From Styela clava (lineage: Eukaryota), in the NCBI RefSeq assembly GCF_964204865.1, contig NC_135250.1, positions 11,284,001 to 11,348,000 on the forward strand: a DNA stretch of 64,000 nucleotides, given 5' to 3'. The notes beneath the pieces were generated by a model. That model made no database searches. It was not told the DNA's origin and saw only the letters and a program-made list of their open reading frames with translations. Position numbers and translations under genes: made by a program. Below, in pieces: positions 34,401 through 57,600 of the stretch; the stretch's first letter is position 1; each line of letters starts with the position of its first letter.

Positions 34401-37400
34401 TTCTGTTGGTAGCGTGAAAGCAGGATTACTTTCTCCAATGTTATTTACAGCCTTGACTCTAATGACATACTTCATACCAGTAAGGAGCTCTTCGACCTTG
34501 AATCCAGTCTTCTCAATGAGCCGGCTACATAATTAAAAAAATTATGTATTTCAAGTCCAAAACATGGCATATTCAACAAAATCTCTCCATTACTCAAACA
34601 TTTCTACCTACCTATTGCATGGAGTCCATTCTTTGTGACCTAGCTGCTGTTTATCTACCATGTAGCCTTTTATGGCAGAACCACCATTCGTCCTGGATGC
34701 ATTCCACTTTACCAAAAGATAAGTGTTCTTTTTTTCTACAACTCTCAAGTACTCTGGACGACTAGGTACATCTGTCAAGCAGAATATTTTTTATACAATA
34801 TGTAATTAATATTCAATAGTTATAAGGTTATCAAATAAACCATACCTAATGGATCTTCGCAAAGCACTGGAGGACACTCGACCCAAGGTCCTTTTCCAAC
34901 ATCATTTTCAGCACATATTCGAAAAGCATAAGTACAGCCCACAACAACATTGCTTGCTTCAACTTCAAACTGCAAAGATAAAGTCAGTATCAGTGGTCTT
35001 ATTGGAAAAATCCTTCTTCGTTCAATCTATGCAAGGTTACTCTATATTTCTATAAAAACCATATACAGTGATGAGTCACTAAGTTAAATATAACCGATTA
35101 GTATTTTATACCTTCTCTGTGTCCTTGACTGCTAGCCATGCTTTCATTGATGTGTCACGTTTTTCAATGAAGTATCTTGTAATAAGCAGTCCTCCATCAT
35201 CAGATGGTACTCTCCATGACAATGCAACAGATGATTTTGTAATAGCTCCAGTTTCGAATTCCTGAGAAACACAAATCGATTTAAGCACAATAATTCATAT
35301 TCACAAATTTTTAAAATTTAGTAAAAAAGTTACCTTGACAGGTCCTGGGACATCAAGTACATTCACCAGACAAGTAGTAGTCTTGGTTCCACAGACATTC
35401 TTAGCGGTTACTGTATATTGGCCCCAATCTGAACGTTGGCACTTTTGAATTCTCAATAATGAACCTGTAAGATAAATGTTATCATTTGAACAGTTTCCCC
35501 CTCTTATCTACCGCAATTCAATAAATACAAATCATTGACTTGCCTTTTTCGGAATTTACAACTTCAACATGAGATGGTAGAGATTCAGAATCCTTTTGCC
35601 ACGATATTTCAGGTGCAGGTCTTCCAGTAACATTGGCCATAATTTCGATCATTTTACCACTATGAACTGTAAGACCATCAGCAACCCCCGCAGCCAGATC
35701 AATGTGTGGGAGATCTGGAAAGCAAATATGCAACACATAAATAAAAGATAAATCATAGTGATAATGATATTTTATTTACTGGGCTTACCAATTTTTTCTT
35801 TAACAGTAACTTCTATTTCAGCAGGTTTGCTTTCACCAGCTCTGTTGACAGCTTTCACTCTAAAATTACATACTTGGCCTTCTTCTAATGAGGTAATAGT
35901 ACAGCTTAATGCTGTTATCTTCTTTTCAAAGCACTGTTGCCATGACCCATCTTCAAGCTGCCTTTCTACTTCATAGAAGATGCGTGAATCACCCCCAGAA
36001 TAACTTGGTAATTCCCATTTGAGAGTTACAGAATTGTTGGTGACATCAGTTACTTTTAGGTGACATGGAGGAGCAGGGACACTAGCTGGATCTTGACAAG
36101 TGAAAAAATCACTTTCAGGGCTGAAGTTTCCGAGACCGGCTGCATTTTCTGCACAGACTCTGAACCGGTATGATGAATCCTCATAAAGGCCAGTGATAAC
36201 CTGAAGGTAATGAATATCACATGCTTGAAAAGTTGCTACTTATCTCAAAAAATTAATTTCAAAATTTTTTTTTACTTGATATTCATTTGTTCTTATCAGG
36301 TCACGAACAACTCTTGTCCACTTTCCAGTTTCAATATCTTTTCTTTCCAAATGATACCCGAGTATAGAGCTTCCTCCATCATTAGGTTCATTCCAGTTTA
36401 CGAACATAGCTTTACGTGTAACATCTACAACATTTGGCTTTTCTGGTGCACCTGGTTCATCTGCAAAGGAATTTTCTCAAGTAATATATATTCATTTTGC
36501 CACACTTTGCCTTTCATATATACCAGTAAGCAAGTTTATTTACCAAATGCCATTTTTGCCACATAAGGCTCAGATTCCAGCCATGGTCCAACTCCAAGCT
36601 TGTTTTCTGCAGCTACTCTAAAAATGTATTCTGTTCCTGTCACAAGTTTTTGTGCTCGCCACCTTGTACATGATATTGTCGCGGACAGTGTAGACCAATT
36701 CTGAAAGATATAATCAGATTATTTAGTTATATAAATATAGTATATCAAATTATTTTTATCGAGTAATCAAGAACCTTCTTGTTTGATTCTCTGACTTCCA
36801 CAACATAATTGAGTATTTCAAAGCCTCCATTGTCAGCAGGTGGCTTCCAGTAAATGGTCACTGCCTCTTTGGTGGAATCTTCAAAAGTCCATGGAATAGA
36901 ACAAATATCTGGAACATCTGAAAAGACAAAAAGTTATGAATATTAAACCAGTAAGTAGTGACAGTAATTAGTAACTTTGCTGTTCCGTGAAACACTGAAA
37001 AATACTAACCAGTCACAAAAACTTCGACAGACGCAGTGGCACGACCTTGTTCATTTTCGAGACAAATAAAGTATTTCCCTTTATCAGCTCTTGTGCATGG
37101 TCCAAGATGAAGTTCAACTGTGTCGTCAGTTGTCTAATAACAAACAAAGTCGGTGTTATTATTTGAATAAGGTATCATATACTGAACAATTCAAAGTTAC
37201 TAACTTTCAATATTCTTGTTGGTGTGCAAACAACATCAGTTTCTTCTTTGTCATATTGCACCCATCTTATTGAAGGCTTCGGAACACCAGAATATGTTGC
37301 AGTTAATGTGAGTTCTGCACCTCCACGAACTTCTATACCTTTCTTCAAATGAGAAGCAAAGTGAACGGTTGGGGCAGCTATAAAGAAAAAATAGTAGGTA

Positions 37401-40400
37401 ATGAATCTGATAAAATCTGATAAAATCATCAACTTAAGATCGTATAAATGATACAAACCTATAGGATCCTTAGCTGCTATTGGAGGAAGTTGTGCAGGTT
37501 CACCTACACCTGCTTTATTCTTTGCATAGACTCTGTATTCATACTCTAGTTCTGGCGTCAGATTTTCAACAGTGTATTCAGTGTTAGGATAGTTATCAAT
37601 GTCTCTGATCCAATTCGATCCGTCTTTTTCAGTGAAATCCACACAATATCCAGTAATAATGCTTCCACCATCATGAAGTGGTTTCCGCCAAGAAAGAGAT
37701 AATGTTTTGGATGTTGGTTCGCTGTATCTCAATTCTATTGGTGCAGAAGGTGGAGCTACAGGATTCATTGCTGTGACAGACTCTTTGAGCACCGCTGGAG
37801 ATCCACAACCAACTTTGTTGTATGCAGTAACCCTCAAGTTGTAAGTCTGGTTACGAATTAAGCCATCAACTTTCCAAGTAGTTTTATCTGTGTTATGTGT
37901 TGCAATTTTCCAGGTTCGACGTCCAACTTCTCGTCTGAATAAATTCCAATCATATTATACAACAAATATGAATGAACAAAAAAAATATGGGTTCAATTTC
38001 AATTATTATGCTTACTTTTCAACAGAATAATACATGATAGCACTTCCACCATCGTCTGTCGGGGCTTTCCATGACAGCACACATGATTCATTACATATAT
38101 CACTGACGATAGGTTCTTCTGGTTCACCTGGACGATCTAGTACAAAAAATTCATAATTTTCAGAATTTAATATTATAAATAACTTATAGATAACATATTA
38201 TTAACAGATTCTTACCAATCACTACCACATTACAAGTCTTCAAAATGGTTTCTATTTTGTTCTCGAGAATAATTGAGTATTTTCCACCATCATTTTTTGT
38301 TACCATAGGTATGAATAAAGATGAGACATAACCAGTTACGGAAGTCTGGAAAAAAATTGCGTTATTTAAATACCCAGTAAAATTAATTCATTTACCGAAT
38401 GAAATTCCAACTTACAATTGCATTAGATGCCAGAGCTTTGTCATTAAGATGCCAAGAAATAGCGGGTGTTGGTTTTCCTGTAAATGGAACCTTCAGTCGC
38501 AACTTCTCTCCAGCAATTAGAATGATATTCTCATCAAGAATTGTGCAGGTTGGTGCACCTAGAACATGAGTCAATGATTGGTATCTTGAATGCATTTCAA
38601 GTACCGGTAGTTTAAAATAAATAAAACTAATACTCACAATCAGGATGGTCAACTGAAATCTCTTCAGTTGCCTCACTTGCTTTGCCTAGTCCAGCAGAAT
38701 TGTAAGCACAGACCCTAAAATTATATGAGCGTCCTTGACGAAGACCAGTTATCTGTAACAAAATTGAAAATTATTAATTTGATGAAAGGTTTCAAAAATT
38801 CACTTAATTATTCAAAAATCACAAGTTGTCTTATAATTACCTCCCCTAACGGTTCGGAGAAAGGCACCACATTGCAACGTATCCACTCTTCTCCTCCAGC
38901 CAGACAACGTTCGACATAGTATCCCAAGATATCATCTCCACCATTGAGAGATGGTATACACCATTTAAGAGTAACAGATGATATGCTTGTTGTCACCATT
39001 GTAACATTAGTAGGTTGGCCAGGTGGTACTGAAATAAAAAGGAAAATTGTTGTCAATTTTCTGTGGATTTTCTAATAACAACTAATTTATACTTTCTGTA
39101 ATTAAAAACTGATGTGTACTCACATATAGGATCTCTGACTATAAAATTCAGTGTTGGTTCACTTGGTTCTCCAGAACCCGCTTCATTTATGGCAATAATT
39201 CTGAACTGAACTTCAGCGAATGGCTCGATTTTTTCGCACTGAAAAAAAAATTGAGATCTATGAAGCAATGTTCGAATTATATTTATTTATACATATACAT
39301 GAAAACATTCAACTACCTTGTATTTACATGTTGCATCGTTTGTCCGCTCTACCTCAACCCATTGCTGTTGTCCTGAGACATTTTTCTTCTCAATACTGTA
39401 ACAAGCTATATCAGCTCCACCATCAAAGACTGGTTCACGCCAAACTAAATCAACATCATAACGAGATACACTGGTCGTTCTAAGTGATCTGGGTTTTCCT
39501 GGAACACCTACAATTACATAAAAAAAGAATTATTTTAATGTTACAAGAAATAGAAAAAAACATTGTGTATTGAAAAATATACTTACTGTACAAGCAAGCA
39601 GCTGTCACAGCTTTGCACTGATTCCATTCACTTTGCCCAATTGCGTTTACAGCAGCTACTCTGTACTCGAAAGAAGAGCCCTCCTTCAGATTATTTTCGG
39701 TGTATTCAGTAGATTCAATAAATACAACATCTTGCCAATTTTGTCTTCGCTGTTCTCTTTTTTGCAAAACATATCCTGTTATGCCACAGCCGCCATCATG
39801 ATCAGGCATCATCCACTGAAGTGTGACTGACGTTTTGGTGGTTCCGGCACTTTTAAGTTCTCTTGGGGAATCTGGTGCAGTTACTTTAGGCTTGCAAGTC
39901 ACAGTATCAGATTCTTCACTTGTGATAGATTGACCAGCTTTGTTGACAGCATAAACCCTGAAATTGGAAATATTATCGTTAGAGCAAATGCTGCAGAGGA
40001 AGTAGTTCCAAGAGAATAGAAGATCACAACACTTCTTACTTGAAGCTGTATTCATATTTCTTTGGTATTAGATCAACAACTTCATGTTCATTAGTCTTAA
40101 CATTAGCTTCCCAAGTAATAAAATCTTCTTTCCATTCATTGGCACCAACATCACGTTTTTTCAACAAAATGACATAATGTGAAACAGGGCATCCACCATC
40201 CAATTCGGGTTCACTCCAGAATAGTTTACAGCTAGTTTTGTTTATCTAAAAATACAAAAAATACAATTAAAAATCAAATTCTATCAAGCATTTATTAACT
40301 CTTATTGGGATAAAAACTTACCTCAAGAAGAGATGGTTTTCCAGGTCGGCTCGGTGGCTCAATAGGACTGATGGCCATCACCGGCTCACTTGGTTCACTT

Positions 40401-43400
40401 GCTTTACTAATTCCAGCAATGTTTTCTGCAAGGACTCTGCATGCAAGAATAAATGAAGAATATACATTGTTACATAAACCAACCTTTTCCCTATACCAAA
40501 AATGGGAACGTGAATGCTGAGAATAATTACCTGAAATAATATTCCTTGTCTTTCTGAAGACCATCAACATGATAGGAAAATGTTTCAGCATCCAGTGCTT
40601 CATTATTCAATCTTATCCAGCTACCGTCAGATCCTGCTCTCATTTCAACATAATACCCACTTACAACCTTTCCACCATCTGAACGAGGTTCATGCCACAT
40701 AACAGTCATAGAGTTTTCGGTGACGTCACAAACGTCAGTCGCATCTGGAGGGCATGGTGCACTAAACGGATCTTTTGCTACTACACCGGTGGTAGAAGCA
40801 GGCTCACCAATGCCATATTTGTTTACAGCAGAAACCTGAATTTCAAGTATAAAAAGATTTAAACCCAAATAGAATTATGAATGTACAGAAACATGGCTGT
40901 AAACTATCAAGAATCTGAGCCCAGTTCATATATACCCCAAAAGTTAATTGCAAGGTGGTTTTAACACCCAATACTTACTCCAAACTCATATTCACGGCCA
41001 TCGAAAAGTTCAGTTGCCTCGTATTTGAAGACATCAGACTTAACATCCGAATTAATTTTAGTCCATTTTTTACGTCCAAGTTCTCTACGTAGCATTACAT
41101 AGCCATTGATGTCTGCACCGCCATCATCTTCCGGAGCAATCCAACTAAAGCTACAGGTTTTTGCAGTTACGTCTTCCACATCTGTAAACAAGTTTATTTT
41201 TTTATGCATCTGATTATACAAGAATGACGAAAAATCTTATAGTATGTTACCTATGCTCAATGGTGGACCAGGTTTATCAAGAACTTCCACTTTACATTGA
41301 GTGGAGACTTTTCCATGTTCATTTTGTGCTATGACTGAATAATCACCTCTGTCATCACGAGTGGTCTAAAAAATGTTGCATGGTTAAACACTGTTAGAAC
41401 TACAGCATAAAAAAACGCTAAAAGCTAACTAACCTTTAGAATTCTAAGTATTGAACCAGTTTCAGTTGGGTCAACAACTAGTTGCTGGTCAGGAATGACT
41501 GGTACATTGTTACATGTCCATCTGATGACTGGGGCCGGCCGTCCAGTCACCTTTGCAACAATGTCAACAGGTTCACCAGCTCTTACAGTTATTCCCTCTC
41601 CAGCCCCATACTCAAGAACAACAGTAGGTAAAGCTGTAAATACAAGTTAAAAATTGTGGTGAAATGATCTCAAGAAAATACTACAACAATTGAAATATTA
41701 AAGTTTTAGTGTGTTAACCTTTTTCGTCCTGCACAAGGATGTATTCAGTTGGTTCTGAAGCCTCACCAGATCCTTCTTTGTTAACAGCACGAACCCTAAA
41801 CTGCCAGTTCATATCAGTCTCCAAATCTTTGACAACAGTTTTTGTTTTAGGTCCATCAGTAGAATGATCGAACTCATATTCATCATCATCTTCAGTTCTT
41901 ACCTCGATGATGTAATCTATAAAAACGTTAGTGGGTGTGTATAATATTACCGTTTTAATTTTATAAAATCAGTTGAAAAAAAACACTCACGGATGATCTT
42001 TGCCCCTCCATCAGATTCCGGTGATATCCAAGACAAAGTGACGGAATCCATTTTAACATTCGAACAAACAAGATTTGTTGGAGCATTCGGTGGTTCAATA
42101 GCATCCTCAGCAGTAATAGGTTGAGACAATTCAGAATAAGGTCCTTTACCATAAGCAGTAGTAGCACAAACACGAAAAACGTAAGTTTTGCCTTTTCGGA
42201 GATCAGTTACACTGCATTCTTCAACAACTGATTCTGTGACCTTATTAACAAAGCACAAAACAATTATTATTTGTGAAACAATAATGTTAATAGAAAGTGC
42301 TGAAACGTCAACTTACTTTAGTCCATGCTTTTCTATCGTTTTCTCGCTTTTCAACAATATAAGCAGTGATAGGTGAACCGCCATTATCAGAAGGCGCCTC
42401 CCACGATAGGTAAGAGGAAGAAGCAGTTACTTCACTGGTTCTCACATTAAACACTTGACTGGGCTTGCCTGAAAATACATGAAATATTCAGCATCCATGA
42501 AAAAGAAACAAAAAAGTCGAGATTTATTAAATACAACTTACCATATACAGACACTGTTAAGTGGCATACAGCTTCACCTTCTGGATTCTGAAGTACAAGT
42601 TTATAGTCACCAGCATCGACTGTTCTTGCGCTTGATTTGATTCTTAACAAAGCATATGTAGATCCAGATTCCAATTCCGTTCTATCATCTCTTTTGAGAA
42701 CTTTTTCATCTCTAGATCTAATCCACGCAACAGTTGGAACAGGAGCTCCAAATATTGGCACACGAATGTGAATAGTTTCTTGCTCAACGACAGTGATATG
42801 ACGCTTTGTCTCATCTAGGCTGAAACTTGGTGCAACTATAAAAATGCATAACAGAGTTAATCAAATTGTTCGATGTATAGCCATGATAAAGAGACATAAG
42901 TATATTTATAAACCTGATAAGTCTTGTGCTGTCACGGGTGGAGTTTCATCACTGGATTTTCCAATTCCTGCTTTGTTTTGAGCTTTAACACGAAATGAGT
43001 AAGTCTGGCCTTCTGTCAAGTCTACAATGGCATGTTTTGTAATCGTAGGTCCCGTAATACGAGCTACAGTTCTCCATAGAGCTTTATCGGCAGATACCTC
43101 ACACTCTTCAACCATATAGCCAGTAACTGCAGAACCACCATCGCTAACAGGGAAAGACCATGAAATATCGATACTGGATTTTGTCGGATTCTCACACACA
43201 ACTTTTATTGGAGCAGAAGGAACATCTGTAAAAAGTAATTTCAATCTCGAATCTGGAATTCAACAACAAATACGATATCTGTATTCTATATTGAGAGAAA
43301 TCAGAAAAACAGTCAGCAATTCAAATTCAAAAATTTTATAGTGGGAAATAACTTGCCGATTGCATCTTCAACGAGAATTAATGTCGTAGGTTCACTATGT

Positions 43401-46400
43401 TTTCCGTTTCCAGCTTTATTGAAAGCTAATACCCGGAAATAGTATTGGCGGCCTTCGACAACATCTGGTTGACATACTCTAACTTCATTTTCGCCAGCTT
43501 CAGTTCTTACGCATTGAGTCCAACTAGAAACATAAAATTAACATTTTTAAATTAAGATTGTTTTATAGTTGTGTCACTGTTTCACTAAACTTACATTGAA
43601 TCCATTTTTCCTCTCATTTCAACAATGTAACCTAGGATTTCTTCACCACCATCAAATTCCGGTTTGATCCAGTTTAGAGTAACATGATCACATCTTATTT
43701 CGATAGCTTTAAGAAATTTAGGTTCTTCTGGTGGACCTGTAAATAGTTTTAAATCAGTGGCACATCAACAATGAAAATGCAATGGATGTATTTCACTAAG
43801 TTATACTCACCATATTGTGGTTTCACCAGAATAGGATTCACCAGTTGTACGGGTTGAGATAACCCAACCCTATTCTCACATGAAACGCGAAAAAGGTAAC
43901 TGCTACCTTCAATCAACTTATTGACCTAAAAATTAAAATATAATCACTCATTTGATTAAATTGTCATCTTATTGAGGTCTCACAAAAGTCAGAAAACTTA
44001 CAGTTATTTCAGTGTCTTCAACATCATCAGATACACTTTGCCACATTTTCCTTTTGATATCTCTTTTTTCTACCAAAAACTTGGTGATCGGGCTTCCACC
44101 ATCTTCTTCAGGTTCTGACCATATCAGTGATACGCTTGATGAAGTCACTTCAGTGACAGTGAGATGGATCGGAGATGATGGCTTACCTGAAAAGTGATTC
44201 AGTAGTAAAACAGGACTATTTCTACCAAATTTAGATTTGAACGGCAAATAAGAAGTATTTCTTACCAATCACTAACAAGTCAAATTTAGCATGTGATTTT
44301 CCATGCTTATTGGTTGCAGCAATTTGATATTTTCCAGAATCTGAACGCATTGGCTTACAAAACATAACTTTAAGTTGTTCATGCTCTATTTCCAAATATT
44401 CATCATCCATTGGCAGTAGTTGGTCTCCAACCTCCTATAAAATCAAAGTTGAAACAGAGTATGGGAAAAGTTTATTAATGTAATCACCTCATTCAGCATT
44501 CCCACAAACCTTATACAATTGATATTTTGGTCTGGGTATTCCTTTGCATTGGACAGGGATGATGATGCCTCCACCAGTATGAGCGGTCACATTGTCATCA
44601 GGTACGAAAAGTGATGGTGCAATTGCCAAATCAATTATTGCTTTTGTATAAGCATTTTGTGTTCGAGATTTTACAACATACTTCCCTCTATCTTCAGTGT
44701 TGAAGTCGAGGATTTCCAGAATGTGCTTTTTGCCCTAATAAAAAAAGAAATAAATTGTAATATGTTTTAAACTCATAATGCAATGTGTTTAATTCATACA
44801 CAGCCTTTCGAATGAGACATTCACCCAACCAACTTGTGTACAGGTTTTCTGACATAGTTATATAGTTAAGTTTTTAAAATTTTACCCCATCAGAAATCCT
44901 TATGGTTTTTCTACGGTCTTCTTTGATGCGGTCTCCATCGAAACTCCATAAGATATCATTTGAAGGCTTGTTGAGTTCGCAAGTAAGAAAAACTTTTGAT
45001 CCAGGTTGGAAACTGCAGTCATATAGTTTCTTCACAAACCTTAGTGGAGCACTTGTTATTCTAAGTTTTGTTGAGCATTCATCATCACCAAGACGACAGG
45101 TATAGATTTTCTGTGAATAGGAATATCAAATAGTTTAAAAAAAATTTTCATTATTCATTTCCTAATCTGTATACCGTAATTCATCTGCCAAGTATTCGTT
45201 CATACCTCATCACAACCAATTCTCACATCGTCAATAACAAGACTGCGAAGTTTTCCAGATGCAATTGCTTGAATTCTTTCACTGCCTCTGCCAAACAACA
45301 ATGCCTTTCCATCAGCCAGCCATTGTACATCACCGCCTAGGGTTGAGATTTCAACAGTAAGCACAACACGGCTTACTTCTTCAGCATCAGTACTATTACG
45401 GAGGCGTTTCGTAAATATAGGTAGAGCTTCTGACACGAGCAACTTCGCTTGATATTTGCTGTCCATAATCTAAAAAAATTAAATTAATTATGCAACTGTG
45501 TTCAAACGCTTTTGCCTTAATTTTTATGTGTGAATTACCTGTGCACCTATGACAGAATAGTCATCTTTTAGAGTGCAATGTTTCAGCTCAAGTGAATACT
45601 TCTTGCCTTCATTTATCATAACAACGAAATCGCTTGCACTGAGTTCCTCGCCATTCTTTGTCCATGTGATCTGAAAGTTATATATTTTTTAATAAAAGGT
45701 TATTCAAGCAACCTATACAATGTGAAATATATATATACATACGCACCTTAGCTCCAGCTTTGTTGGAGGTGCATTTGAAAATGGCAGATTGATTCTCACG
45801 AACATTTGCATCTTTTGGACCAACATCAATAGCAACTGGAACAACTTCCAGCAAAGCACAGGTTCTCTGATCAGCACAAACTACTTCAATCTTTCCATTG
45901 TCTACCAACTCAGCTGGCATAATTTTCAAAATACGATCTTTATCGTTAGATGTAATATGGAATCGTTTATCACTGGTGATTTCAACTCCATTGAGTAACC
46001 ATGAGACTGGATATATTGCTTTGCTGACTTTACATTGAAACTGTATTTCATCACCAGCACAGCACCAAATATCTTCAATTTTTGATGTAAACCCAGGTGG
46101 AAATTCTGTGCCACAAAAAATGTAAATATTTAAATAAAATAAAAAAAATAAAAAAAATAAAAAAAAAATAAAAAAAAAATAAATATTATTCAAACATAAA
46201 AATGAATCAAATAAAGATAATTCAAACATTTACCTTTCACTGTAAGAAATGCGGATGTTTCAGTCTTTTCTCCAATTACTTTATTTGTGTATTTGTTGGC
46301 TTGAATCAGTTGAACGTCATCTAGTAGAAGACGACGAATAACACCATCAGCAACAATGATGATCTTGTCTGTCTCTTCAAACAATTTACCATTACAGAGC

Positions 46401-49400
46401 CATTCAACCTGAGAAATTATTGAACGTTAATAATATCGACTAATCCCTCTCATACGAACGAAGTAATACGAAGTCATAAACAAACATAAAACAATTGACA
46501 ATTACCTCTACATTAGGCCTAGAAACTTCACATTCCAAAATAATGTTGTCAAACTCTGTGCAAACTATATCTTGTAGAGGTGTGGCATAGAAAGCTGGTG
46601 GCCAATCAACCCAGAGTTTAGCTGTGGTTTCCACATCACCCACTTGACAGGTAACAATAGCTCTGTAATAAGCATATTTTCATGGTTAGTCGTACAAAAA
46701 TTAAACTGAAATTATATTTTATTTACATTGGTGCGTAATACTAACCTGTCTACTTCAGTACAATCTTTGATTGTTAAGGATCTTGTTTTATAATCGTCAG
46801 TTATGACATATCTTCCAGTTGAAGACATCTCGACTTTGTTCTCACCAACAAACCATAGCACTTGCTGGTCCCGTGGTGATACAACGCAGGAAAGGAAAGC
46901 AGTCCCCATATGAGGGACTGATAAATCTTTTAAAGGTTGTAGAACTGCAATTGGTGCTTCTGCAAAATCACACACATATTGATGTTACATGAAACCAAAA
47001 ATAAATCTTGAATTAAAAACCTGAATACAATAAATACCTTCAACAGTCATAGATGCTTCAGTCTTTGCAAATCGAGCGGTGACAGAATACAAACCAGCAT
47101 TACTCATGGCTACAAAAGGGATAGTCAAAGTTCTTTTGTTTCCTTCAGCAGAACTTATGACATCCTTGCCAATTGGAAAAGTTTGACCATTAAGTCGCCA
47201 TTGAACTGGCACATCTTCTGACAGAATACATTCAAGTGCAACGGAATCTTTCTCAAATACTTCAGTGGCATTCAGTGGCTGAACAAACTTGATGCCATCT
47301 ATATACATTAGAAAAAAATCCATAAGTAAGAGCCTAAAAAGAAATCAGTAATCTAGTGTGAAAAAAGTTACCTTTAACTGTGATTTTTCCTGTAGACTTT
47401 TCATTTCCAGACTTACAAGTGTAAGATCCTTTGTCACTTTTAGTAATGTCTTTTACAACAAGTGATTGAGATTTTCCAGAAATGACAAACTCATACTTGC
47501 CACTTTGTTCATTCAATTCCTTGTTTTCTTTGAACCATTTTACGCTCCCAGAATTCCTATTTTTAAAAATATTTTGACATAGCTTAACAAGCTTTAATTT
47601 AGATAATATAATATACAAATACATAAATTATTTGGAGTGGTAACAATAACTTTAATTCTAGGCAAGATTTCTTGTCACTTACACCCAAGTGATAAGATGG
47701 CATAATCACTATTGTAAAGCAATTTGATACAACCTTAATAAAGAGCATTTCTTGTTAGTAGTACCCGTTTCAATGTTATAGGATGCGAGAGATTAAAAAC
47801 GAAGTTATTCGTATAAAACATACTTGTTCATGCCGCAAGTTAACGTAGCGGAAGGCTGTCCCTCTTCTGCAATAATATCAGAAATTTGTTGAACAATCTT
47901 TGCTGGCTTCTGTTTGATGCTCAACTTAGCAGAAGAAGAAACTTTTCGAACGTGACATTCAATTTTTCCTTCATCTCTGACCTGTGGAATCAATGTTAAA
48001 TTTTTATTTAATCGAATGCTTTATTGTTCATGCAAATTTGTAAATCATTTTCTACCAATGCTTACCGTACAGTTCTTGACTAAAAGTTGTAACTTTTTCC
48101 CATTATGTGTCATTTGATATTTTTCAGACTGTTTGATGATTTTGTCATATTGGATCCATTCAGCATCAACCTCTTTAGATGTATTAATTTCACATGACAA
48201 GCATGCATCTTCACCTTCTTGAAATGACACAGCTTTCAGTGGTTTTGTGAAAGTAATTCCAATTTCTAAAAAAATAATTAAGTTGTTATGAATGAAGCAT
48301 ACTTTCACAACAATGCAAAATACGATCAATGAAATGAACAAGTACAACATTTATTACCTTTCACAACAAGTTTTGTCGACGTCTTGCTATCAACACCATC
48401 ACATGTCCAATCTGTGTTGTCTGCCATAGTGGTCTTGAAAATCACTAAACGCCGCAGAACACCTTCACTTTCAATCTTATACCTACAAATAATGAGGTTC
48501 ATTAGAGATGTGTCAGAATTTGGTTTAGCAAAGCATTAAACTGCTATAGCTTACTTTTCTCCATCAGAAAGTTTATCATTTTCTCTATACCATGTTACAA
48601 TTGCATTTGGTCGACTAACTTCACATTCCAATGCTACTTTGTCCATTTCTTCACATGTTTTAGTTTTGAGTGGCTTGGAAAAGTGCACTGGCGGTTCTGA
48701 AAAATATGTGAAAATATTTCAGTTTTGTTCACTATTCTAACTAAAACCAATGTCGACATACCTATTACGGTCAATCTGGAAGTTGACTCTGCAGTTTTAG
48801 AAGAAAATCTGATGACAGAGGTGTCTGATAATTGGCAGTTATGCATCTTCAATGTGTGTCGCCTGCCTTCTTCCAAAATTTCAATGAAATTTCCCCTTTT
48901 GAGCTTAACATCATCTAATGAAAATGAAGTAATAAATTGAAAAAACAATTCTACATATAGATTTTTCAGTGCATGAAAATCATTTTATAGCAATACCTTT
49001 ATACCAGAAGTGAGGTATGTTGTCATAATTTGTTTCGACAACAAATTCAGCAGTGTTCTTTTCAATTACTGTAGTATCACTCATTGGTTTGACAATTTCA
49101 ACAGTGTATTCTGAACAGAATTATCATTCATTAATTAAAGTAATAGAAATAGCACAGTCTTTAATATAACAAAACTAACCTTCAACAGATAATAGAGCAC
49201 TAGACTTCTCCTCCTCAGCGTGAGCTGAAATAGTAGCAGTGTCATCATCCAAATCGACACTATGAATAACCATCCAGTGTTTATCTCCATCACTCCCAAA
49301 ATCAACATTTTTGGTCCTGCTCATTTTGGCACCATTTTTGAACCATGAAACCTCGACGTCTTTGTGTGAAAGAACTATTTCAAATCGAGCTTCATCTCGT

Positions 49401-52400
49401 TCAATCACTTTAGTTTCTTTCAATGATTGGATGAATTTTATTTCTCGAGCTGTGGAAGAAATTATACAATTTTGGCTTTTTTTAACAAAAACATAAAAGA
49501 TAATAAAACTAAATCATATTAAAAGATATTCGCTTTGTTTTCTAAATAAACAAAAGTCGATGGGATGGTTGAACATGTATATCATACTAAGTACTTGATT
49601 TTTTGAGTTTATACATACGTGCAACAGTCAGTTTTCCATAGGTCCTCACATCATCAGCATCACAGATATATTTTTTCTCATCTTCAAATGTGCATTTGTG
49701 CAATATTAATGAACGTTTGCAACCCTCTGCTACGATAGTATGCTTTTCTGAAGCCTGGATTAAAGTACGGCCTTTGTACCAACGTACTTGAGCAGATTTT
49801 CTCGATACCTTGAAAATATTCAACAAATCAGTTTTAACATTAAAACAAATGTTGCAATAAATCAATTATTAATCTCACCTCGCATTCCAACTTTGCGTCC
49901 GATGTTTCTTCAACGATCACATCTTTTAGACCGCATACAAACTCAACAGGAGGCTCAAGAACTTCTAGGCGTGCAATAGATGAAGCACTTCCTGCTTTTA
50001 TCTCAACTCGACCTGACTGTTGAGCAGTTAGATGGCTCAATACAAGCCTATGTTTGCGTCCAATTGATTTAATTCTGCAAGAAAATTTGGGCGAATTATC
50101 ATATTGAACTTCTAAGAATGACAGCATTACGAGTAGTATAGATAGCAGAACAATTACAAGTTATCAGAGTATGATCCTGAATGCTTTCAGTAATAGAGCA
50201 TTGAAACAGATCGAATGCTGTTAGCACAACCTATCTTACTAAATAGATAGTATACTTATAATTTTAGTGCACTTATTCCACTTACAAGACATTTTCGGAG
50301 ACTTTCAGAAGAGTATCATTCAGAAACCAATTAACATTAACTTCATTGTGAGAGACCTCGCATTCGAAAGAAGCAGTCCCATCTTCTGGCACTTCAATTT
50401 CTCGCAATTCCTGACGAATTTTGATGCCACGTTCTGAAAAAAAAAGTAAAAACGACACTTGTATATACTCAAAATTACAGCGCAATTATCGATGAAATAA
50501 ACCATACCATCAATGCTCAGGTTGCATCTGGTTTCCACTTTTTCACACTTGCATGAATAAAGACCTGCATCCTGTTCAGTAACTTTAGTTATAACTAAAC
50601 GACGCCATTTTCCTTCAGTAATGATTTCAGCATGTTCTGAAGACTTCATTTCAGCACCGTTTTTGTACCATGTCACTTTTCCAGACTGCTTACTGAGCTC
50701 ACAAGATAATTCAGCAACATCCAGTTCCGTAACACTGGTGTCTTGAAGCTTTTTGGTGAAACGAATGCCTGATTCTACAAAAGAAATGATTGTGAATAAT
50801 GAAGAACCAGATCAATATGACAACAACAAAAAATAACTTGTTCAAACATACCATTTACAGTAATATTTGCCGTGGTTTTCATGCCAATTGCAGCAAAATA
50901 ATATGTTCCGGCATCATCAACAGTGATATCATGTAGTATGAGCGATTGTTTTGTGCCTTCAGTTCGAATTTTGATAGACTCTGATCTGGTTAGCTTTTGA
51001 TCATTACAATACCAGGAACCTATGTATAAAGAATGAAGAAAATTGTTGCAGAAGTTTGTATATTTTGCTTAAAGACACAGAAAAATCGTAACATACCATG
51101 AACATTTGGCACACTCAAAACACATGATAAAGTAACAGTGCTGCCTTCATCAAATATTCCATCTTCCAGCTTATCTAAAATTTCTATCTCAGATGAGTCA
51201 ACAATTAGAGATGTAGAATCCTGAAAATTGAGTCCATTGATAAATCGCATTAGAGTATTAAAACTTATGAAGTTCACTAAATTAGAACAAGCACAAACCT
51301 TCAAACCACAATCAGTTTCAATTGAAATTGCGCCAGCATCTTCAAGCGTAACATCAGTAAGAGTCAAAGTATGCTCACGCCCATTTTTTGAAATTTTTAT
51401 GACATTGCTGTTTTTCAACTTTGCACCTTGTTTGTACCATGTAATATTGACATCTTTATGGGACAATATGCAATGAAAAGTGGCCTCTCCACCTTCGCAA
51501 GTGCGTACTTCTTGAAGACTTGATTCCACTTTTGCTGAAAGTACATAATTTTTTATTATTATTCGAATGCAAACACATCATTAGACTTTCAAGATAAATA
51601 CTTTCAACTTCCTTACCTGCAGAATCAATTGGCACACATTTGTATGTCGATTGATCATCTGGTGATATATAGTTCACAATCAGAGAACGCTTACAACCAT
51701 ACGACTCCAATCTATACTTTTCACTTTCGCGAATTTCAACAGTGTCATTCCTGTGTTTCAAGAGAATTTTGAAATTGTTTCAGTTTTGTTTTTAGAACAG
51801 ATCGTAACAAACCAGAATAGCTATATATCATTAAGATCACTTGTGGCAGCAAGCTTAGCATCTTCAACCACAGGATTTGAACCTGTGACACTGAGCATGT
51901 CAACGTCCCACATCAATCAAACTCGTAAACCCAGGAAAAGTAATGCGCATATTCACATCACATATATCACTATATACTGACCATTTGACAATCGTTACCA
52001 CAAATAACCACAAGCAGAGTTTAAAATGGAAATAATAAATGAAGATGAGAAATAGAATTCGAATTAATTATCACTGGTCTTTGCAACAGAAGAATGGCTC
52101 ATGAAACAATGCGAAATTGTCTTTTTTATTGTACAAATGAATGCATACTTGAGCCATTTGACTTGAATGTCTTCCCTTTCAACTTCATAATCAAATTTTA
52201 AACTTTTTGGCACTTTTGTATCCTTAGCGACAGTCAGTTTTGCTTCACCAGTTCCAATAACTTTGTCTTTGCAAGACTCATCATCAGACTCTGATCTGAT
52301 CAAATCTGCCACTGAAGAATCAATGACTTCATACTTTATCACACCAGCCTGAGAAACTCGCAGGTTGTGAAGTTTGAGAGTGTGTACATTTCTGAGGAAA

Positions 52401-55400
52401 GAAAGATGGATTATATTTTTAAAAGACATTTTAGACGAAATAATACTGTTAAGTTTAAATTGATAAAAAATAAATCACCCTTGCTGGCTTATTTGGACAT
52501 TTTCTCCATTTTCCAATTTTTTTCCATCAAGATACCAGATGAGCGTGGTTGAATCACGTTGAGTTACCACTTCAAATGAAGCAGCACCACCAACATTCAC
52601 CGACTTATCTTGGATTCCATCTGAATAGATAATAAAATAATACATATAAAATTGTACCGTAATTATGAAACAATAACAAGTACTTGAACCTAATATATCG
52701 ATGCCATAATTTCCTTGATTTAAATGAGGAATCAAGAATATTTTTTTTTATTACAACAGACCCACCTTTGACAATCAATAATCCTGTTGTGGAACTTTGA
52801 CCGGATATACAAGTATACTCTGAAGAATCTTCACTGTTTGTTCTTTTGACAATCAGGGATCGTTTTCTTCCGTCTTCAATCAACTTGTATCTGTGATAAA
52901 AATATACAATTATTCGATTTCAATGCAAATTACTGATTCCAATTTTAAAAAGTATTAGGTAATTTCGATAATCACATACTTGTCAGTTGCATTCTTTAAA
53001 TCAATTGGTTCTCCATCCTTGTACCACGTGACTCTAGCGTTGACATCTTTAACTTCACATTCAAAGATTACAGTCTCCATTTCAGTACAAGTATAGGTTT
53101 CCAAACATGCAGAAAATGCTTCTGTGTTTTCAATATCCAACTGAGCAACTTTTTCATAATTTAGTTCTTGCAATTTGTCCAAATCATCTAAATTTGAGCA
53201 ATTCAATGATTATAAAAATGTTATTCATGATAAAATTTATTTCAAAAATTATTTTAATACTGCATGTCCATACTATGCAACTTGTAACAACATTCACATA
53301 CCTGCAACACGTAGTCTTGCTGTAGATGAATAAGGTCCAGCAACAATCCTATAGCGAGATGCATCGCTGAGATCCACATTCGAAATCTTCAGTCGATAGA
53401 TGTCTCCATCTTGAATTATTTCGAATCTTTCACTGGGTGTGACCTTGCGATTTCCTTTGTACCTGAAAAAGTAACATAATAAGCTTTAAATTTTTTTGAA
53501 AAAAGGGCTTATTGACTTGATTATAGATTCTTCAAATTATACTACTTACCAATTCACTTCGATTTCTGGTACAAACATCTTTAGTTCGGCTAAAAACTCA
53601 ATATCAGTGCCTTGTAAAGCATTGATACTTTCAAGACCTCTAATCTCTTTGACGGGTTCAGTAACAGACAAGTTTCTCTGCATAAAACTAAGCAAATCAC
53701 CGGCATCTGAAGCATCTTGACAAACGGCAGCTAACAATTCTTCATCTTCGATCTGAAAATTCATCATTGGTAATGATTATACTTATTAAGTGTGCCCATA
53801 ATAAATTCACATAAGTTATATGTGTGCACATAATAAATTCACATAGGCTATTTAAGTGTACACATAATAAATAAATTCACATAAGATTATATTTATTAAA
53901 TGTGCACATAATAAATTCGCATAGATTGAATTAACTAAGAGTGCACGTATTAAATTTAAATAGATCATATTTAATAAGTCTTAACATAATCAATTCACAT
54001 TTCAATTTGTCAAAAAAAGTCATTATGATATTGGCTTACCTCTTGGCTTTCCTGATATCTTGACAAAGTAGGTTTCAAGTCCTTAAGATTGTAATATCTA
54101 GCATATTTTTCGTATTCTTTCGGATCAACTTCTCTTAACAATTCCATGATTTCTGCAATATCTTCACATTTCACACCTGGTTTGTCATTCGCTGATACTC
54201 TGAAAAACCATATATATTTATTATTTTCACATTGAATGCAAACCAAATGGTATGCTCAAAAAATAAAACATACTTTCTAAGTTGTTCCGGCTCAAATTTC
54301 TCCTTAACTACATGTTCTGTAACTGTGACTTGGAAAGATGAATCAACTTCCCCATGTTTGTTTGATGCTACACATCTGTAAGAAGATAATGTTATATTTT
54401 ATGCAATTTCATCATATTTGGTGAAAGAGTAAAATCAGCACAGATTTCATGCAGGAGACGATAGATTTTAACCAAGTTTACTTGCCTCGCACACAGTCTC
54501 AAGTAAAAAAACTGGTAAAAAAACGCAATTTCTAATCTTCTTCCTTCTAAAAATATACCTGTATAAACCAGTGTCTGGGACATCTAGGTTTGTAACTTTC
54601 AATGTATAAGTATGGGCTTCCTTGTTGTGAGACATTTTAAAACGTCCATATCCGTTAATCTTCATCCACTTTCCTTTCGTCCAATGAACAGTTGGTTCTG
54701 GGTTTCCGAAAACTTTTGCAGTAAACACTGCAGTGTCACCTAAGAAGAGATTCCCATAAGATAATACACGTATTTGTAGATTTTCTTATAAAACAACAAT
54801 ATTATTTGTTCATGATATAGACAGCACTGAAATTATGTGCCCAGATAACTGATGTTCCAAAAGTCAATTACTAGATATTTTGAAGATTCGACTACATACC
54901 AGTAATTTTTGCCTGATCTTTGGGTTTTCGGACAAAAACAGGCAATGTAGCATTCGGATCTACTTCCATGTCATCGCAGGCATCTTCGGATTCACTGGAA
55001 GATCCACGTCGGTCGTCTATGAAAAGTGTGAAGAGAAATTAGAAGCAAATAACATTTAGGATACAGTTATATGAACTCTTCTACTTTTGGGGAATAATTG
55101 AAAACAATAATGGTATGAAAAGTCATGACCTCAAGCACTGCATCGAATTAACATAAAAGAAACAAATATCGCTACACTGTTATTTATATTTCCAGTTTTC
55201 GGCCTTTTGAATTTAGAAAATTTTACATTGGTCCAGGCAATATTTTTACCATAAGAATTTTCGTAAATTGGATTTTTTGTATATAAGGCCTTTCGTACGT
55301 AGAGTTTATACTGTATATGTACAGGAATACATGAAGAACATCATGCGGTTGCAAGAGTTTGCCCATATTCTTGCTCCCATCTTCCGTGGGGTTCGAACCC

Positions 55401-56080
55401 ACAAACTTACGTAAAGTGCTCGTACTTGAAGGTAGGCACAATATACAAACCTTCAAATAATGAAAATGAACAATGCCATCTCGGCGGTGTTTCGATCGGC
55501 ATGTAATTTTGAAACACGGGATGCAACTAGTTCGTTAACAACTTACATTTTGACAAACAGACGCGGCACTTCGTCTCTCCGTTTTCATTGTCTGCAAAGC
55601 AAACGTATTCTCCGTAATCGCCCTCACGGACACGGGACACTGTAAGGACGTACTCGTCTTTCTCCTGATCCTGGTATATAGTAATACGCCCATCTTCTTT
55701 CATTGGTTTACCCTAATCAGAAATTGGAAATAATTAATCATAAACCACGAATGTTATTGCCAAGCTGATGCAAAAACATCAGCGTTGGGTCTCAGAATTG
55801 CTTTCCTTCCAGATAAATAATTTTAGTGTTTTGCAAACCTGTTTCAGCCAGATAACCTGCGGTTTCGGACTTCCGGTGATACGACTGCTAAATTTGATTG
55901 TTCCTCCGAGTTTAGCGCTTCTTCCTCGGGGCTTCTCTACGAATTCTGGGGCAACTCCTGTTTGATCATATTAACATACAATTAGACAAATGACTACGTC
56001 AACTATACAATTTAGTAAAAGCTGACTTAGTTGTTGAAATAAAGTTAACCTTTAACTTCGGTAGATGAAGCTGGATCCAT
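1..56080 (-). CDS. ttn: Titin/connectin-like giant muscle protein (multi-exon; 3' part outside window)
   Basis: Nearly all minus-strand ORFs are Ig-I-set or Fn3 fragments (W..P..DGG..IT.Y.VEKR, Y.FRV.A.N..G, G.P.P.V.W.K, D.G.Y) bounded by GT/GC-AG sites that join in frame. The N2A module and the Ig-Fn2-Ig-Fn3 / Ig-Fn2-Ig-Fn3-Ig-Fn3 super-repeats are diagnostic of chordate titin. Confidence 0.95.
4500..8925 (-). CDS. ttn: Titin C-zone 11-domain super-repeat 3
   Basis: Ig(EEPAFDLDADLRRTL)-Fn2-Ig(YRPSVDSH)-Fn3-Ig(ILPRVEFD)-Fn3; boundaries approximate. Confidence 0.88.
8926..14405 (-). CDS. ttn: Titin C-zone 11-domain super-repeat 2
   Basis: Ig(ESPKFNLDEDF)-Fn2-Ig(IEPTFDLS)-Fn3-Ig(EPPNVALE)-Fn3; boundaries approximate. 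Confidence 0.88.
10241..10740 (-). mobile_element. Probable retroposon (SINE/LINE 3' end) remnant in the 917-nt intron 10143-11059
   Basis: GC/CpG-richer block inside an AT-rich intron. On the minus strand it ends in AATAAA followed by a short repeated tail (ACTACTGATA twice). The 5' limit is uncertain. Confidence 0.5.
14547..19635 (-). CDS. ttn: Titin C-zone 11-domain super-repeat 1
   Basis: Ig(EEPEIILDAKF)-Fn2-Ig(ECPVIKLP)-Fn3-Ig(VAPAIVLD)-Fn3; boundaries approximate. Confidence 0.88.
16301..16394 (-). other. GC-AG intron
   Basis: CTA G|GCAAGT...ACAG|TT joins KQEL to VAPAIVLD in phase 1. Confidence 0.8.
19636..38558 (-). CDS. ttn: Titin D-zone: six 7-domain super-repeats (Ig-Fn-Fn-Ig-Fn-Fn-Fn)
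   Basis: By manual exon joining, repeats begin at about 38558 (APTCTIL), 35716 (DLPHIDL), 32415 (EPPSICM), 29605 (EAPVANF), 26724 (DAPVIQP) and 23440 (EKPAIFL). Confidence 0.87.
19950..20294. mobile_element. Degenerate hAT-like MITE in a titin intron
   Basis: TIRs CAGGATTGTGCAACCT and AGGTTGCACACCCCTG (14/16 match); no clear TSD; accounts for most of an enlarged intron. Confidence 0.75.
23547..23702. repeat. 78-bp tandem duplication spanning an exon 3' end and its splice donor
   Basis: Copies at 23547-23624 and 23625-23702 differ at about 5 positions. Confidence 0.95.
35465..35543 (-). other. GC-AG intron
   Basis: AAA G|GCAAGT...ACAG|GT joins VNSEK to GSLLRI within an Ig domain. Confidence 0.8.
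38638..44186 (-). CDS. ttn: Titin I/A junction: Fn3x3-Ig-Fn3x2-Ig-Fn3x6
   Basis: The first Fn3 contains EKRDIKRKMW, close to ERRDIKRKTW as I recall it in the first Fn3 of vertebrate titin. Six consecutive Fn3 domains lie at ~41279-38638. Confidence 0.85.
43226..43356 (-). other. GC-AG intron
   Basis: ATC G|GCAAGT...ACAG|AT joins VEDAI to DVPSAP in phase 1. Confidence 0.8.
44266..53187 (-). CDS. ttn: Titin I-band tandem Ig segment (~21 Ig domains, distal-Ig type), no PEVK
   Basis: Repeated F.K.L.D..V.E...A.F.CE.S....V.W.K.G......K..I...G..R.L.I motifs; no Pro/Glu/Val/Lys-rich exon found. Confidence 0.88.
46130..46183. repeat. (A8-10T)n low-complexity intronic tract
   Basis: Read directly. 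Confidence 0.9.
51855..51935 (-). mobile_element. tRNA-derived SINE-like head in a titin intron
   Basis: T-arm/B-box CACAGG-TTCAAAT-CCTGTG (51887-51869) with a degenerate A-box-like GTTTACGAGTTTG upstream; no acceptor stem. Confidence 0.5.
53302..55016 (-). CDS. ttn: Titin N2A-like element: Ig80-like, UN2A helical insertion, Ig81-like
   Basis: Exons 55016-54900, 54739-54559, 54375-54274, 54199-54040, 53752-53550 and 53462-53302 encode FTAKVFGNPEPTVHWTKGKW..GLYRCVASNKHGEVDS..EIMELLREVDPKEYEKYARYY..LLSFMQRNLSVTEPV..PEIEVNWYKG. This matches the vertebrate N2A sequence as I recall it (WTKGKW; DIMELLKNVDPKEYEKYARMY; SFIQQRLSQTEPV). Confidence 0.9.
53785..54000. repeat. Intronic minisatellite, ~5-6 diverged copies of a ~30-40 bp unit
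   Basis: Repeated core GTGCACATAATAAATTCACATA. Confidence 0.85.
55370..55505 (-). mobile_element. tRNA-like T-arm / SINE-like structured element in a titin intron
   Basis: GTGGG-TTCGAAC-CCCAC (55402-55386) plus hairpins TTGAAGGT..ACCTTCAA and ATGCCG..TGGCAT; no complete cloverleaf. Confidence 0.45.
55547..55957 (-). CDS. ttn: N-terminal Ig-I-set domain of the titin-like gene (exons 55957-55839 and 55712-55547)
   Basis: VAPEFVEKPRGRSAKLGGTIKFSSRITGSPKPQVIWLKQ|GKPMKEDGRITIYQDQEKDEYVLTVSRVREGDYGEYVCFADNENGETKCRVCL; canonical splice sites; not listed in the ORF track. Confidence 0.88.
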
Positions 56081-56135
56081 TTCCTCTGAGCTTCTTCTAA
56101 AACTTTCTTAAAACTTTCTGAAAACTTTTTTAAAA
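56050..56135 (-). other. ttn: Putative first coding exon (5'UTR plus MDPASSTEVK)
   Basis: Acceptor TATTTTCAG at 56136, ATG at 56080 with an in-frame TAA 10 codons upstream, and a phase-1 donor at 56049 compatible with the next exon. Confidence 0.7.
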
Positions 56136-57111
56136 CTGAAAATACAATAAATACGGCGTTGGTAGTATTGTACCGTGAATTCTAGAGAACCAGCAATTTG
56201 ATTAGACGAACTTTATAGATGATTAACGCCACGTAACCATGGATTATTTAATAGTTATACATAACAAGAATACACAGAATTGTGACAATTATATAATACA
56301 CGTACCAGAATAACTAAAAATTCTTCAATGTTCTTGGCAACGTTATCTTGATCTTTGCTTGATCTGATTTCGTTTAATCGAACAGTAACTTTGAAAAAAT
56401 AAAATAGTTTGAATATCCTGAAATCACATGGGATGAATTAAAAGCCCACACGAACACGGCGCTATAGATGCATTTTATTTAAATCTACCATAAATGACCA
56501 CCTAAGTGAAATCCAAATACAGCGTTATGTGCCGTGGACGCGTATGTAAAATGGATGCAAAAATATCGTTATTCCCAAATACTTTTGCTGTCAGTAAAGA
56601 CATTCTCTGCTATTTAATGATCGATTGTATTTAATTATTCCCGAGAAGAAAGCTGTGGCCTCCATTTCAGCAATAAAGGCTGCAACAATATATTTATTTA
56701 TTCAATCTTTTTAATGCAAGTTCGGCACGAGATATTCTATTTATGCCGTTTAAATGTTGTTGGGCTTCATATTAGGTTTTGCAATGTCACAAGGTATCGT
56801 CAAATCGACAATGCTTCAAGACCGTATGACCGAAATATTCTAGGATCACGAAATTTTAATCAATCCCAAACGGCATCGTTCCAAGAGCAATTCCTATTAA
56901 AATTAGCGTAAATCTTATTTTGAATCGTGTATATATGCATGAACAAATATTCAAATGATTGCAAATATTACATGTTCAACGAGTTCGAGTATGAGTTTCC
57001 TAAACGAGATTAAATAATTTTTCGGTAATTTTTCGCCGAGTGAGGTCGTTTTTGTCACTAAAACCTCCTAGTTACGACCACATAACAAAATTCTTGAAAA
57101 TCTGTACTCAC

Positions 57112-57142
57112 CTGAAGAGAATATAAAAGGCTTTTTTGTGTG
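57112..57142 (-). other. Candidate non-coding 5' exon or (trans-)splice acceptor region of the titin gene
   Basis: Strong donor CAG|GTGAGT at 57111, preceded by a pyrimidine tract; upstream acceptor-like TTTTCATTTTTCATAACTTAATCATTTAG ending at 57143. Confidence 0.5.
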
Positions 57143-57590
57143 CTAAATGATTAAGTTATGAAAAATGAAAATTAAAGAATTAATATGCATAAAAAATGAA
57201 CAATCGAATAAAATTACAACTCCTCAACAGTCTCGTAAAACCTAAACAGCTATACAACGTAGATTAACCCTCTACCACACAGAGTGTACGAAACTCACTC
57301 GCTAAGCACCGTGTTAGGGTCACAGACTGAACTTAGCGATGTACATGAAAACCCAACTCGGCTACATAACGCTTTCTGGAATATTCCCTTTCGTCCTATC
57401 TATTTACTAATTTAAATGAAACCAGTTTAAAGTTTCATTACGATATTCCACAAACACGGCGAGCTGGCGTATACAACAAATGATACAAAAATCCAAGCCT
57501 CACTCTAATAAATCCTAGTCGTCCTTCATTATTGTCACCTCATAATTGTCAGCGACCTAGACAAGCGAAGCAGTGAAGTAAAATTGCAGA

Positions 57591-57600
57591 ACGTCAGCTG
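57591..57600. promoter_or_regulatory. Overlapping CRE half-site / E-box (ACGTCAGCTG) in the presumed titin promoter
   Basis: Motif read directly. CRE-like plus CAGCTG (MRF) sites are known components of ascidian muscle enhancers, but the motif is short and could be chance. Confidence 0.3.

Follow-up and report, generated by a model that had tools for sequence, protein, structure and literature searches.

A probable stand-alone headless titin gene in Styela clava, with a reading frame that starts one Ig domain before N2A

Titin is usually described as one molecule that extends from the Z-disc to the M-band, and in ascidians, amphioxus and vertebrates its Z-disc and I-band parts lie 5' of the N2A element. 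The connectins of these three groups all contain I-band and A-band regions (PMC12198301). The one known headless form, Cronos, starts in the distal I-band, under the control of a promoter inside the gene for full-length titin, and shows that titin without its head can exist and has a function (Zou et al. 2015, PMC4720518); as an isoform, it is hard to separate from the full-length protein in study. Two diverged titin genes per genome, ttna and ttnb, are found adjacent on one chromosome in teleosts, and ttnb has been described only with a shortened middle-Ig and PEVK region, not as lacking the N-terminal part (PMC4720518, PMC12198301). The gene described here lies on the minus strand of a 64,000-nucleotide (nt) stretch of the Styela clava genome (assembly GCF_964204865.1, 377 Mb; contig NC_135250.1, here C1, positions 11284001-11348000), referred to as the window and numbered from its first letter. 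This gene is probably an independent titin paralogue that is truncated at the 5' end and transcribed from a promoter of its own. What is new is that a separate gene encodes a short titin, which makes it a gene-encoded analogue of vertebrate Cronos.

From position 56080 down to coordinate 1, the minus strand of the window is packed with immunoglobulin (Ig) and fibronectin type III (Fn3) exon pieces, as seen in its list of open reading frames (ORFs), and genome-wide domain maps place more Ig and Fn3 domains on the same strand downstream of the window. Searches and structure prediction were carried out exon by exon. Hidden Markov models (HMMs) built from the gene's own domains yield a domain order of ~20 Igs, followed by I-F-F-I-F-F-F and then by I-F-F-I-F-F-F-I-F-F-F super-repeats (I, Ig; F, Fn3). 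These 7- and 11-domain super-repeats represent the A-band pattern of titin and not the Fn3-Fn3-Ig pattern of twitchin and projectin. Downstream of the window, a Ser/Thr kinase is found at C1:11246853-11247806 (Pkinase, 107.7 and 59.5 bits), between an Fn3 at C1:11248033 and an I-set domain at C1:11246228. The gene spans ~95 kb and, judged by the domain count, the protein would comprise 17-20 thousand residues. By its sequence, namely the super-repeats, the kinase near the 3' end and the N2A homology detailed below, the gene is identified as a titin. Two intervals, 41182-38648 and 29173-25368, contain six or seven consecutive Fn3 domains without a called Ig, which may represent a true irregularity or Igs missed by the HMM.

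Vertebrate TTN shares with the window gene an Ig80-UN2A-Ig81-type element, tandem Igs, 7/11 A-band super-repeats and a kinase near the C-terminus. The window gene differs in that it lacks Z1Z2, the Z-repeats, the proximal and middle tandem Igs, N2B and a PEVK region matching PPAK, and its ORF starts one Ig before N2A. A Z-disc part and proximal tandem Igs are missing: the ORF starts after an in-frame stop codon, and no Ig exon was found in the 200 kb upstream. The Pfam model PPAK has no match anywhere in the genome, although a divergent PEVK-like sequence could escape this model, and the sequence that separates Ig81 from the Ig after it, when read through, showed no exon of PEVK type. Titin_Z (Pfam) has no match in the genome either, a result of little weight given that no control genome yielded a match. 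Like Cronos, the window gene is without the Z-disc anchor and the proximal spring and keeps the A-band part and the kinase. It is, however, a separate gene on another chromosome and starts earlier, before N2A, so that N2A and ~18 I-band Igs are retained. In comparison to the teleost pair, the two S. clava titin genes are located on C1 and on a different contig, C16, and one of them lacks the entire 5' part. Twitchin and projectin show a regular Fn3-Fn3-Ig pattern and have no N2A element. They resemble the window gene in being giant Ig/Fn3 proteins of the thick filament that have a kinase close to the C-terminus and lack a Z-disc head of the titin type (A-band correspondence, PMC12198301), but the window gene carries 7/11 super-repeats and N2A, and an Fn3-Fn3-Ig core was not found in it.

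In a single run search, five RNA runs contained 26-28% of the words of the stretch, a share that fits the exons only. Contigs from three of the runs, belonging to two studies (X1 and X3 of study P1, X5 of study P2), were mapped on 54000-59990; run X6 of a third study, with 6% of the words, provided no contig placed on this interval. Long contigs cross nine joints, and all introns follow the GT..AG rule (CT..AC on the plus strand), which identifies the contigs as spliced RNA; they match the genome at >=99%. The minus-strand exon chain proposed in the initial annotation was reproduced both by re-reading 53000-57500 and by these contigs, which add two non-coding exons to it (Table 1), and a loose contig end at 54040 continues into the exon that begins at 53752.

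At the 5' end, the X5 contig extends 37-38 nt into the 5'-most known exon, colinear with the genome, and X3 ends in an 11-nt loose end whose letters are identical to this exon. The ends of all three contigs thus fall within it, at 11, 26 and 37 nt. No genome-foreign letters are present at the 5' ends of the three contigs, nor was a further upstream splice or a spliced leader seen, and the exon shows no RNA depth above 57200. Transcription probably starts at ~57.15-57.2 kb, at or just above 57149. The initial annotation had followed the reading frame upstream to MDPASSTEVK and expected an in-frame stop ahead of it, depending on the acceptor used. The RNA settles this choice: the acceptor of the start-codon exon is 56136, and the mature mRNA contains an in-frame TAA at 56110-56108, eight codons ahead of the ATG at 56080-56078 (56134-56051 translates as FKKVFRKF*ESFRRSSEE-MDPASSTEVK). 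Owing to this TAA, the open frame of the observed mRNA cannot extend from farther upstream.

Table 1. Features of the titin gene and of its upstream neighbourhood (window coordinates).
Feature	Position	Strand	Evidence
Non-coding exon, 5'-most known	at least 57149..57112	-	Joint 56388 to 57112 in X1 and X5; donor GTGAGT at 57111
Second non-coding exon	56388..56306	-	Joints 56135 to 56306 and 56388 to 57112
Start-codon exon, encodes MDPASSTEVK(G)	56135..56050	-	Contigs of X1, X3 and X5; translation
First Ig (I-set), two exons	55957..55839 + 55712..55547	-	Pfam I-set, E 2.6e-6 and 3.6e-8; RNA joints
Linker exon, acidic/Ser-rich, leads into Ig80-like start	55016..54900	-	Sequence; RNA joints
Ig80-like I-set, two exons	54739..54559 + 54375..54274	-	Pfam I-set, E 8.2e-10 (54740-54561); RNA joints; close paralogous exons on C16 (L024)
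UN2A-like tri-helix-bundle exon	54199..54040	-	Sub-threshold Pfam THB; PDB match; RNA joints
Rest of UN2A-like sequence and Ig81-like, two exons	53752..53550 + 53462..53302	-	Pfam I-set in 53485-53297; match to mammalian UN2A-Ig81
Tandem Igs (~18) after Ig81 and a short linker	53210..44850	-	HMM map with the gene's own Igs
Ig/Fn3 region, 7- then 11-domain super-repeats, leaves the window	44270..1	-	Domain string; Fn3 and I-set maps
Two tandem paralogous hydrophobic ORFs, ~311 amino acids (aa)	59845-60780 + 63274-64206	-	ORF lists

The region above the first exon was searched over 200 kb, using BLASTP with all exon pieces of the window and HMMs generated from the gene's own domains, and no Ig or Fn3 exon of titin was found. 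The absence of Ig exons that had been noted for 56.1-64 kb therefore holds over a far larger distance. BLASTP returned two matches only, both with a repeat-like piece at 20157-20297. This piece is an intronic ORF fragment on the minus strand, with copies 72 kb and 178 kb above the end of the window (63% and 46% identity), and is probably a dispersed repeat. As a control, the same Ig HMM scored the gene's own half-Ig exons at 25-33 bits, with one first-half exon at only 9.9 bits. The initial annotation had placed unrelated seven-transmembrane genes upstream; two hydrophobic ORFs unrelated to titin do exist there, but neither of them has a Pfam match. They share the strand of titin, begin 2.7 kb above its first exon, are not part of the titin gene and mark the boundary of the latter. 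A ZU5-domain ORF follows ~130 kb beyond them, and weak Fn3/LDLa pieces of another gene are present ~185-195 kb upstream. Between the upstream ORF and the first titin exon, a 196-nt unspliced contig of low depth, seen in X5 only, covers 57809-58005 and overlaps a 108-aa ORF (57703-58029, minus strand) without a Pfam match.

These data bear on the option, raised in the initial annotation, that the transcript is a Cronos-like isoform from an internal promoter, while the conventional promoter lies far upstream and the intervening genes are nested in a giant intron. Vertebrate titin possesses such an internal promoter (PMC4720518), RNA contigs drop rare variants and show no starts, and the low-depth contig at 57809-58005 is unexplained. 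Even so, this arrangement is very unlikely. It would have to span 200 kb without any Ig/Fn3 titin exon, in a gene whose introns near the start are mostly 0.1-0.7 kb long, and several unrelated genes lie in between. Moreover, the 5' untranslated region (UTR) is assembled by splicing of nearby non-coding exons and bears the in-frame stop, no contig of the three runs connects the gene to anything above its 5'-most exon, and the C16 paralogue has its colinear upstream Ig exons within a few kb. An internal promoter in a gene that also encodes full-length titin was not found here: the 200 kb upstream showed no titin exons, and the titin with the extended series of Igs maps to the other contig.

This second giant titin-type locus was identified in genome maps of Pfam I-set and Fn3 domains at C16:6060120-6284831 (minus strand). 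At least 11 Ig places occur between 6284831 and 6197088, and ~96 kb of Ig exons (6284831-6189613) precede an N2A-like tri-helix bundle (THB) of its own at 6188582. Further Igs follow, then a 93-kb Fn3/Ig region with Fn3 from 6165712 to 6072927, and finally Igs down to 6060120. A genome-wide THB search returned four relevant places, namely the window, C3:4045054, C1:4554094 and C16:6188582. The exons around the C16 THB are clear paralogues of the window exons (L024). For the second half of the window's first Ig, the sole other genomic match is C16:6191111-6191266 (48% identity), immediately 5' of the Ig80-like exon of C16. When the 3-kb loci are compared, colinearity is maintained exon by exon over the halves of the first Ig, a charged linker, the halves of Ig80 and the THB. 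The linkers differ in composition: the one before Ig80 is Lys/Glu-rich in C16, while that of the window is acidic and Ser-rich. With an identity of 47-48%, the two loci are old paralogues and neither haplotigs nor the products of a recent copying event. The part of C16 with which the window gene is colinear is thus internal, and at the point where the window gene starts, C16 still has ~96 kb of Ig exons ahead. Searches for CRAL_TRIO_2 and spectrin domains, aimed at a SESTD1/CCDC141-like neighbour of this locus, gave no match on C16.

The C16 locus also bears on the proposal that both loci are halves of one split titin, with C16 as the Z-disc/I-band half and the window gene as the N2A/A-band half, in analogy to insect sallimus and projectin. 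Such a division has precedents, since non-chordates distribute I-band and A-band functions over two genes (PMC12198301), and C16 does carry the long Ig region that the window gene is missing. Yet C16, as mapped by Pfam domains, is not a head-only gene, given its own N2A-like THB and the extended Fn3/Ig region downstream, and the order of parts from N2A to the A-band is identical at the two loci. A split, which had been among the options of the initial annotation, is hardly probable on this basis. The remaining option listed there, a stand-alone headless paralogue, gains from the second titin on C16, its single paralogue of the first Ig and the colinear exons.

The element at the N-terminus consists of Ig80, a unique helical sequence and Ig81, which is the arrangement of titin N2A. 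Among PDB entries, the helix exon matches titin 7NIP best (E 2.4e-8, 36.9 bits); slow and cardiac MyBP-C score 22.4 bits or lower (E 1e-3 to 0.08), a gap of 14 bits. The Pfam THB model scores 16.3 bits in 54255-54013, below its cut-off of 25. Among 1.84 billion protein representatives, the helix exon matched only THB-bearing fragments (968 aa at most), including Ciona savignyi titin, which is the best named match, and the mammalian P0012. The latter, used for the mammalian N2A comparison, is a UN2A-Ig81 fragment of the woodrat whose cluster includes human entries and the titin PDB entry 7AHS. The two exons that follow the helix exon are colinear with P0012 by BLASTP (E 4e-10 and 2e-15), and in this alignment the exon boundary falls at the identical position, between W and YKG. 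Identities of 47-70% link the helix exon with the THB exons of, among others, C16 and Ciona savignyi titin. Its AlphaFold model, based on an alignment of 13 rows, shows three helices at moderate confidence, with a predicted local distance difference test score (pLDDT) of 69; a Foldseek search of this 53-residue model against PDB yielded no match below E 3, the fold being too small to inform. A motif, YNLKD.KPTLS, is common to the window helix exon and P0001, a sequence from another sample that is 70% identical, while C16, Ciona and mammalian titin have YGITD(Y/F)R.LL at this place. The derived motif shared with P0001 hints at the presence of the paralogue in at least one other organism.

The initial annotation had recognized one Ig followed by Ig80-UN2A-Ig81, which agrees with the I-set, 7NIP and P0012 matches, but had also seen in this head an architectural link between titin and the MyBP-C/IGFN1 family. 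Under such a view, the window gene would represent an ancestral or intermediate architecture and not a derived truncation. MyBP-C and IGFN1 do share with it an N-terminal module of an Ig, a tri-helix bundle and an Ig, after which Ig and Fn3 domains continue; the Ig-THB-Ig order resembles C1-M-C2 of MyBP-C, and the helix exon matches the MyBP-C THB, if weakly. The difference in bit scores nevertheless points to titin UN2A, the next exons are colinear with mammalian UN2A-Ig81, and each exon of the head has its counterpart, in the same order, inside the C16 titin. In addition, MyBP-C-type THB exons exist separately in the genome (54 and 48 bits) and are only 18-23% identical to the window helix exon. 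MyBP-C and IGFN1 carry an M-domain-type THB in a protein of about ten domains; the window protein has well over 100, roughly 190, and a kinase. Finally, connectins with both I-band and A-band regions in ascidians, amphioxus and vertebrates (PMC12198301) speak against an intermediate. An ancestral link is thus improbable to much the same degree as a split titin. The Ig-THB-Ig head is, to judge from the sequence comparisons, an internal titin N2A exposed by 5' truncation, its likeness to MyBP-C is a look-alike, and the headless state looks derived. Two places outside both titins, C3:4045054-4045152 (L022) and C1:4554094-4554174 (L023), represent these strong, Ig-flanked, MyBP-C-like THB exons.

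Very long genes full of repeats are easily assembled wrongly, but a mis-assembly, haplotig or decaying pseudogene copy of the C16 titin is the least credible explanation of all, considering that the window is free of N, the frames of its exon pieces are open and their domains follow one another in an ordered series, spliced RNA contigs of two studies match it at >=99%, identity to C16 is only 47-48% and the helix exon of P0001, from another sample, shares its derived motif.

Together, the lack of upstream Ig/Fn3 exons, the colinear C16 paralogue with Igs 5' of the shared stretch and the local 5' UTR with its stop codon lead to a stand-alone truncated paralogue. Several points weigh against this conclusion. 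The map of the C16 locus consists of Pfam places and three 3-kb loci, so that its 5' end, a kinase and its unity as one gene are putative; of 926 candidates in the kinase search, 132 were scored. The contigs define no transcription start, and a minor isoform with far-upstream exons may be present among the rare isoforms that they drop. The weak detection of first-half Igs, with its low of 9.9 bits, means that a lone upstream half-exon could be missed. The RNA runs carry no tissue assignment, so that any tie to a muscle type is conjectural, and the headless state has been read in the genome of one species only.

Since related titins have their Z-disc and I-band parts 5' of N2A, truncation represents the simplest history of the stand-alone paralogue. 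It may have arisen by a duplication that set in shortly ahead of N2A and included the 3' end of titin, or from a complete duplicate whose 5' part was lost afterwards; a local promoter, three new 5' exons and a new ten-residue N-terminus would have been recruited. The mRNA probably starts at or just above 57149, contains two non-coding exons and is translated from ATG 56080. The predicted protein consists of the ten new residues, one Ig, the Ig80-like, UN2A and Ig81-like units, ~18 Igs without a recognizable PEVK region, the A-band super-repeats and the kinase, and is devoid of Z1Z2, Z-repeats and proximal tandem Igs. Its super-repeats and kinase should bind along the thick filament, as in titin, while the short Ig/N2A arm would point towards the thin filament, with the Z-disc out of reach by the Z1Z2/Z-repeat route. 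If the arm is held on the thin filament at all, partners of N2A such as ankyrin-repeat proteins would be the only obvious anchor, although attachment through N2A is speculative. Vertebrate Ankrd1 acts as a cross-linker between N2A and F-actin, while direct binding of actin by N2A is contested (PMC8553726). A protein of this type would serve as a thick-filament scaffold and kinase platform, and not as a spring between Z-disc and M-band. It might reside in tunicate muscle without Z-discs, such as the adult body wall, or beside the long titin in striated muscle. The adult body-wall muscle of ascidians has no Z-discs, which makes it a plausible home for a headless titin. A wider hypothesis can be formulated, although it is rather unlikely: tunicates may have fixed a separate, Z-disc-independent titin gene, composed of N2A, a short Ig arm, an A-band ruler and a kinase, for muscle without Z-discs (adult body wall, siphon) or for anchoring on thin filaments by N2A partners. 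If true, it would provide a natural experiment that parts the thick-filament and signalling roles of titin from its role as a Z-disc-anchored spring.

An expressed, separate headless titin gene with N2A can be addressed genetically apart from full-length titin, and this in a chordate near the vertebrates. It could reveal what the A-band part, the kinase and N2A contribute without Z-disc anchorage, and could be used to test the anchoring of titin to thin filaments by N2A, which is contested in vertebrates (PMC8553726). At least in this species, the assumption of one connectin gene in ascidians (PMC12198301) requires revision, and the finding bears on how I-band and A-band functions were split or joined across phyla.

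Three further observations concern other loci in the genome. A third Ig-rich locus of ~60 kb at C1:20925203-20986838 (minus strand) has at least one Fn3 and no THB match, and may be an obscurin-like or another giant muscle gene. Big tandem arrays of apparently intronless protein-kinase ORFs of ~300 aa at C10:4.07-4.38 Mb and C5:2.65-4.43 Mb dominate the list of Pkinase matches. Finally, cellulose-synthase and GH6 matches are adjacent on one strand at C9:16177457-16180164; to our knowledge, a fused cellulose-synthase/GH6 gene is known among animals only in tunicates.

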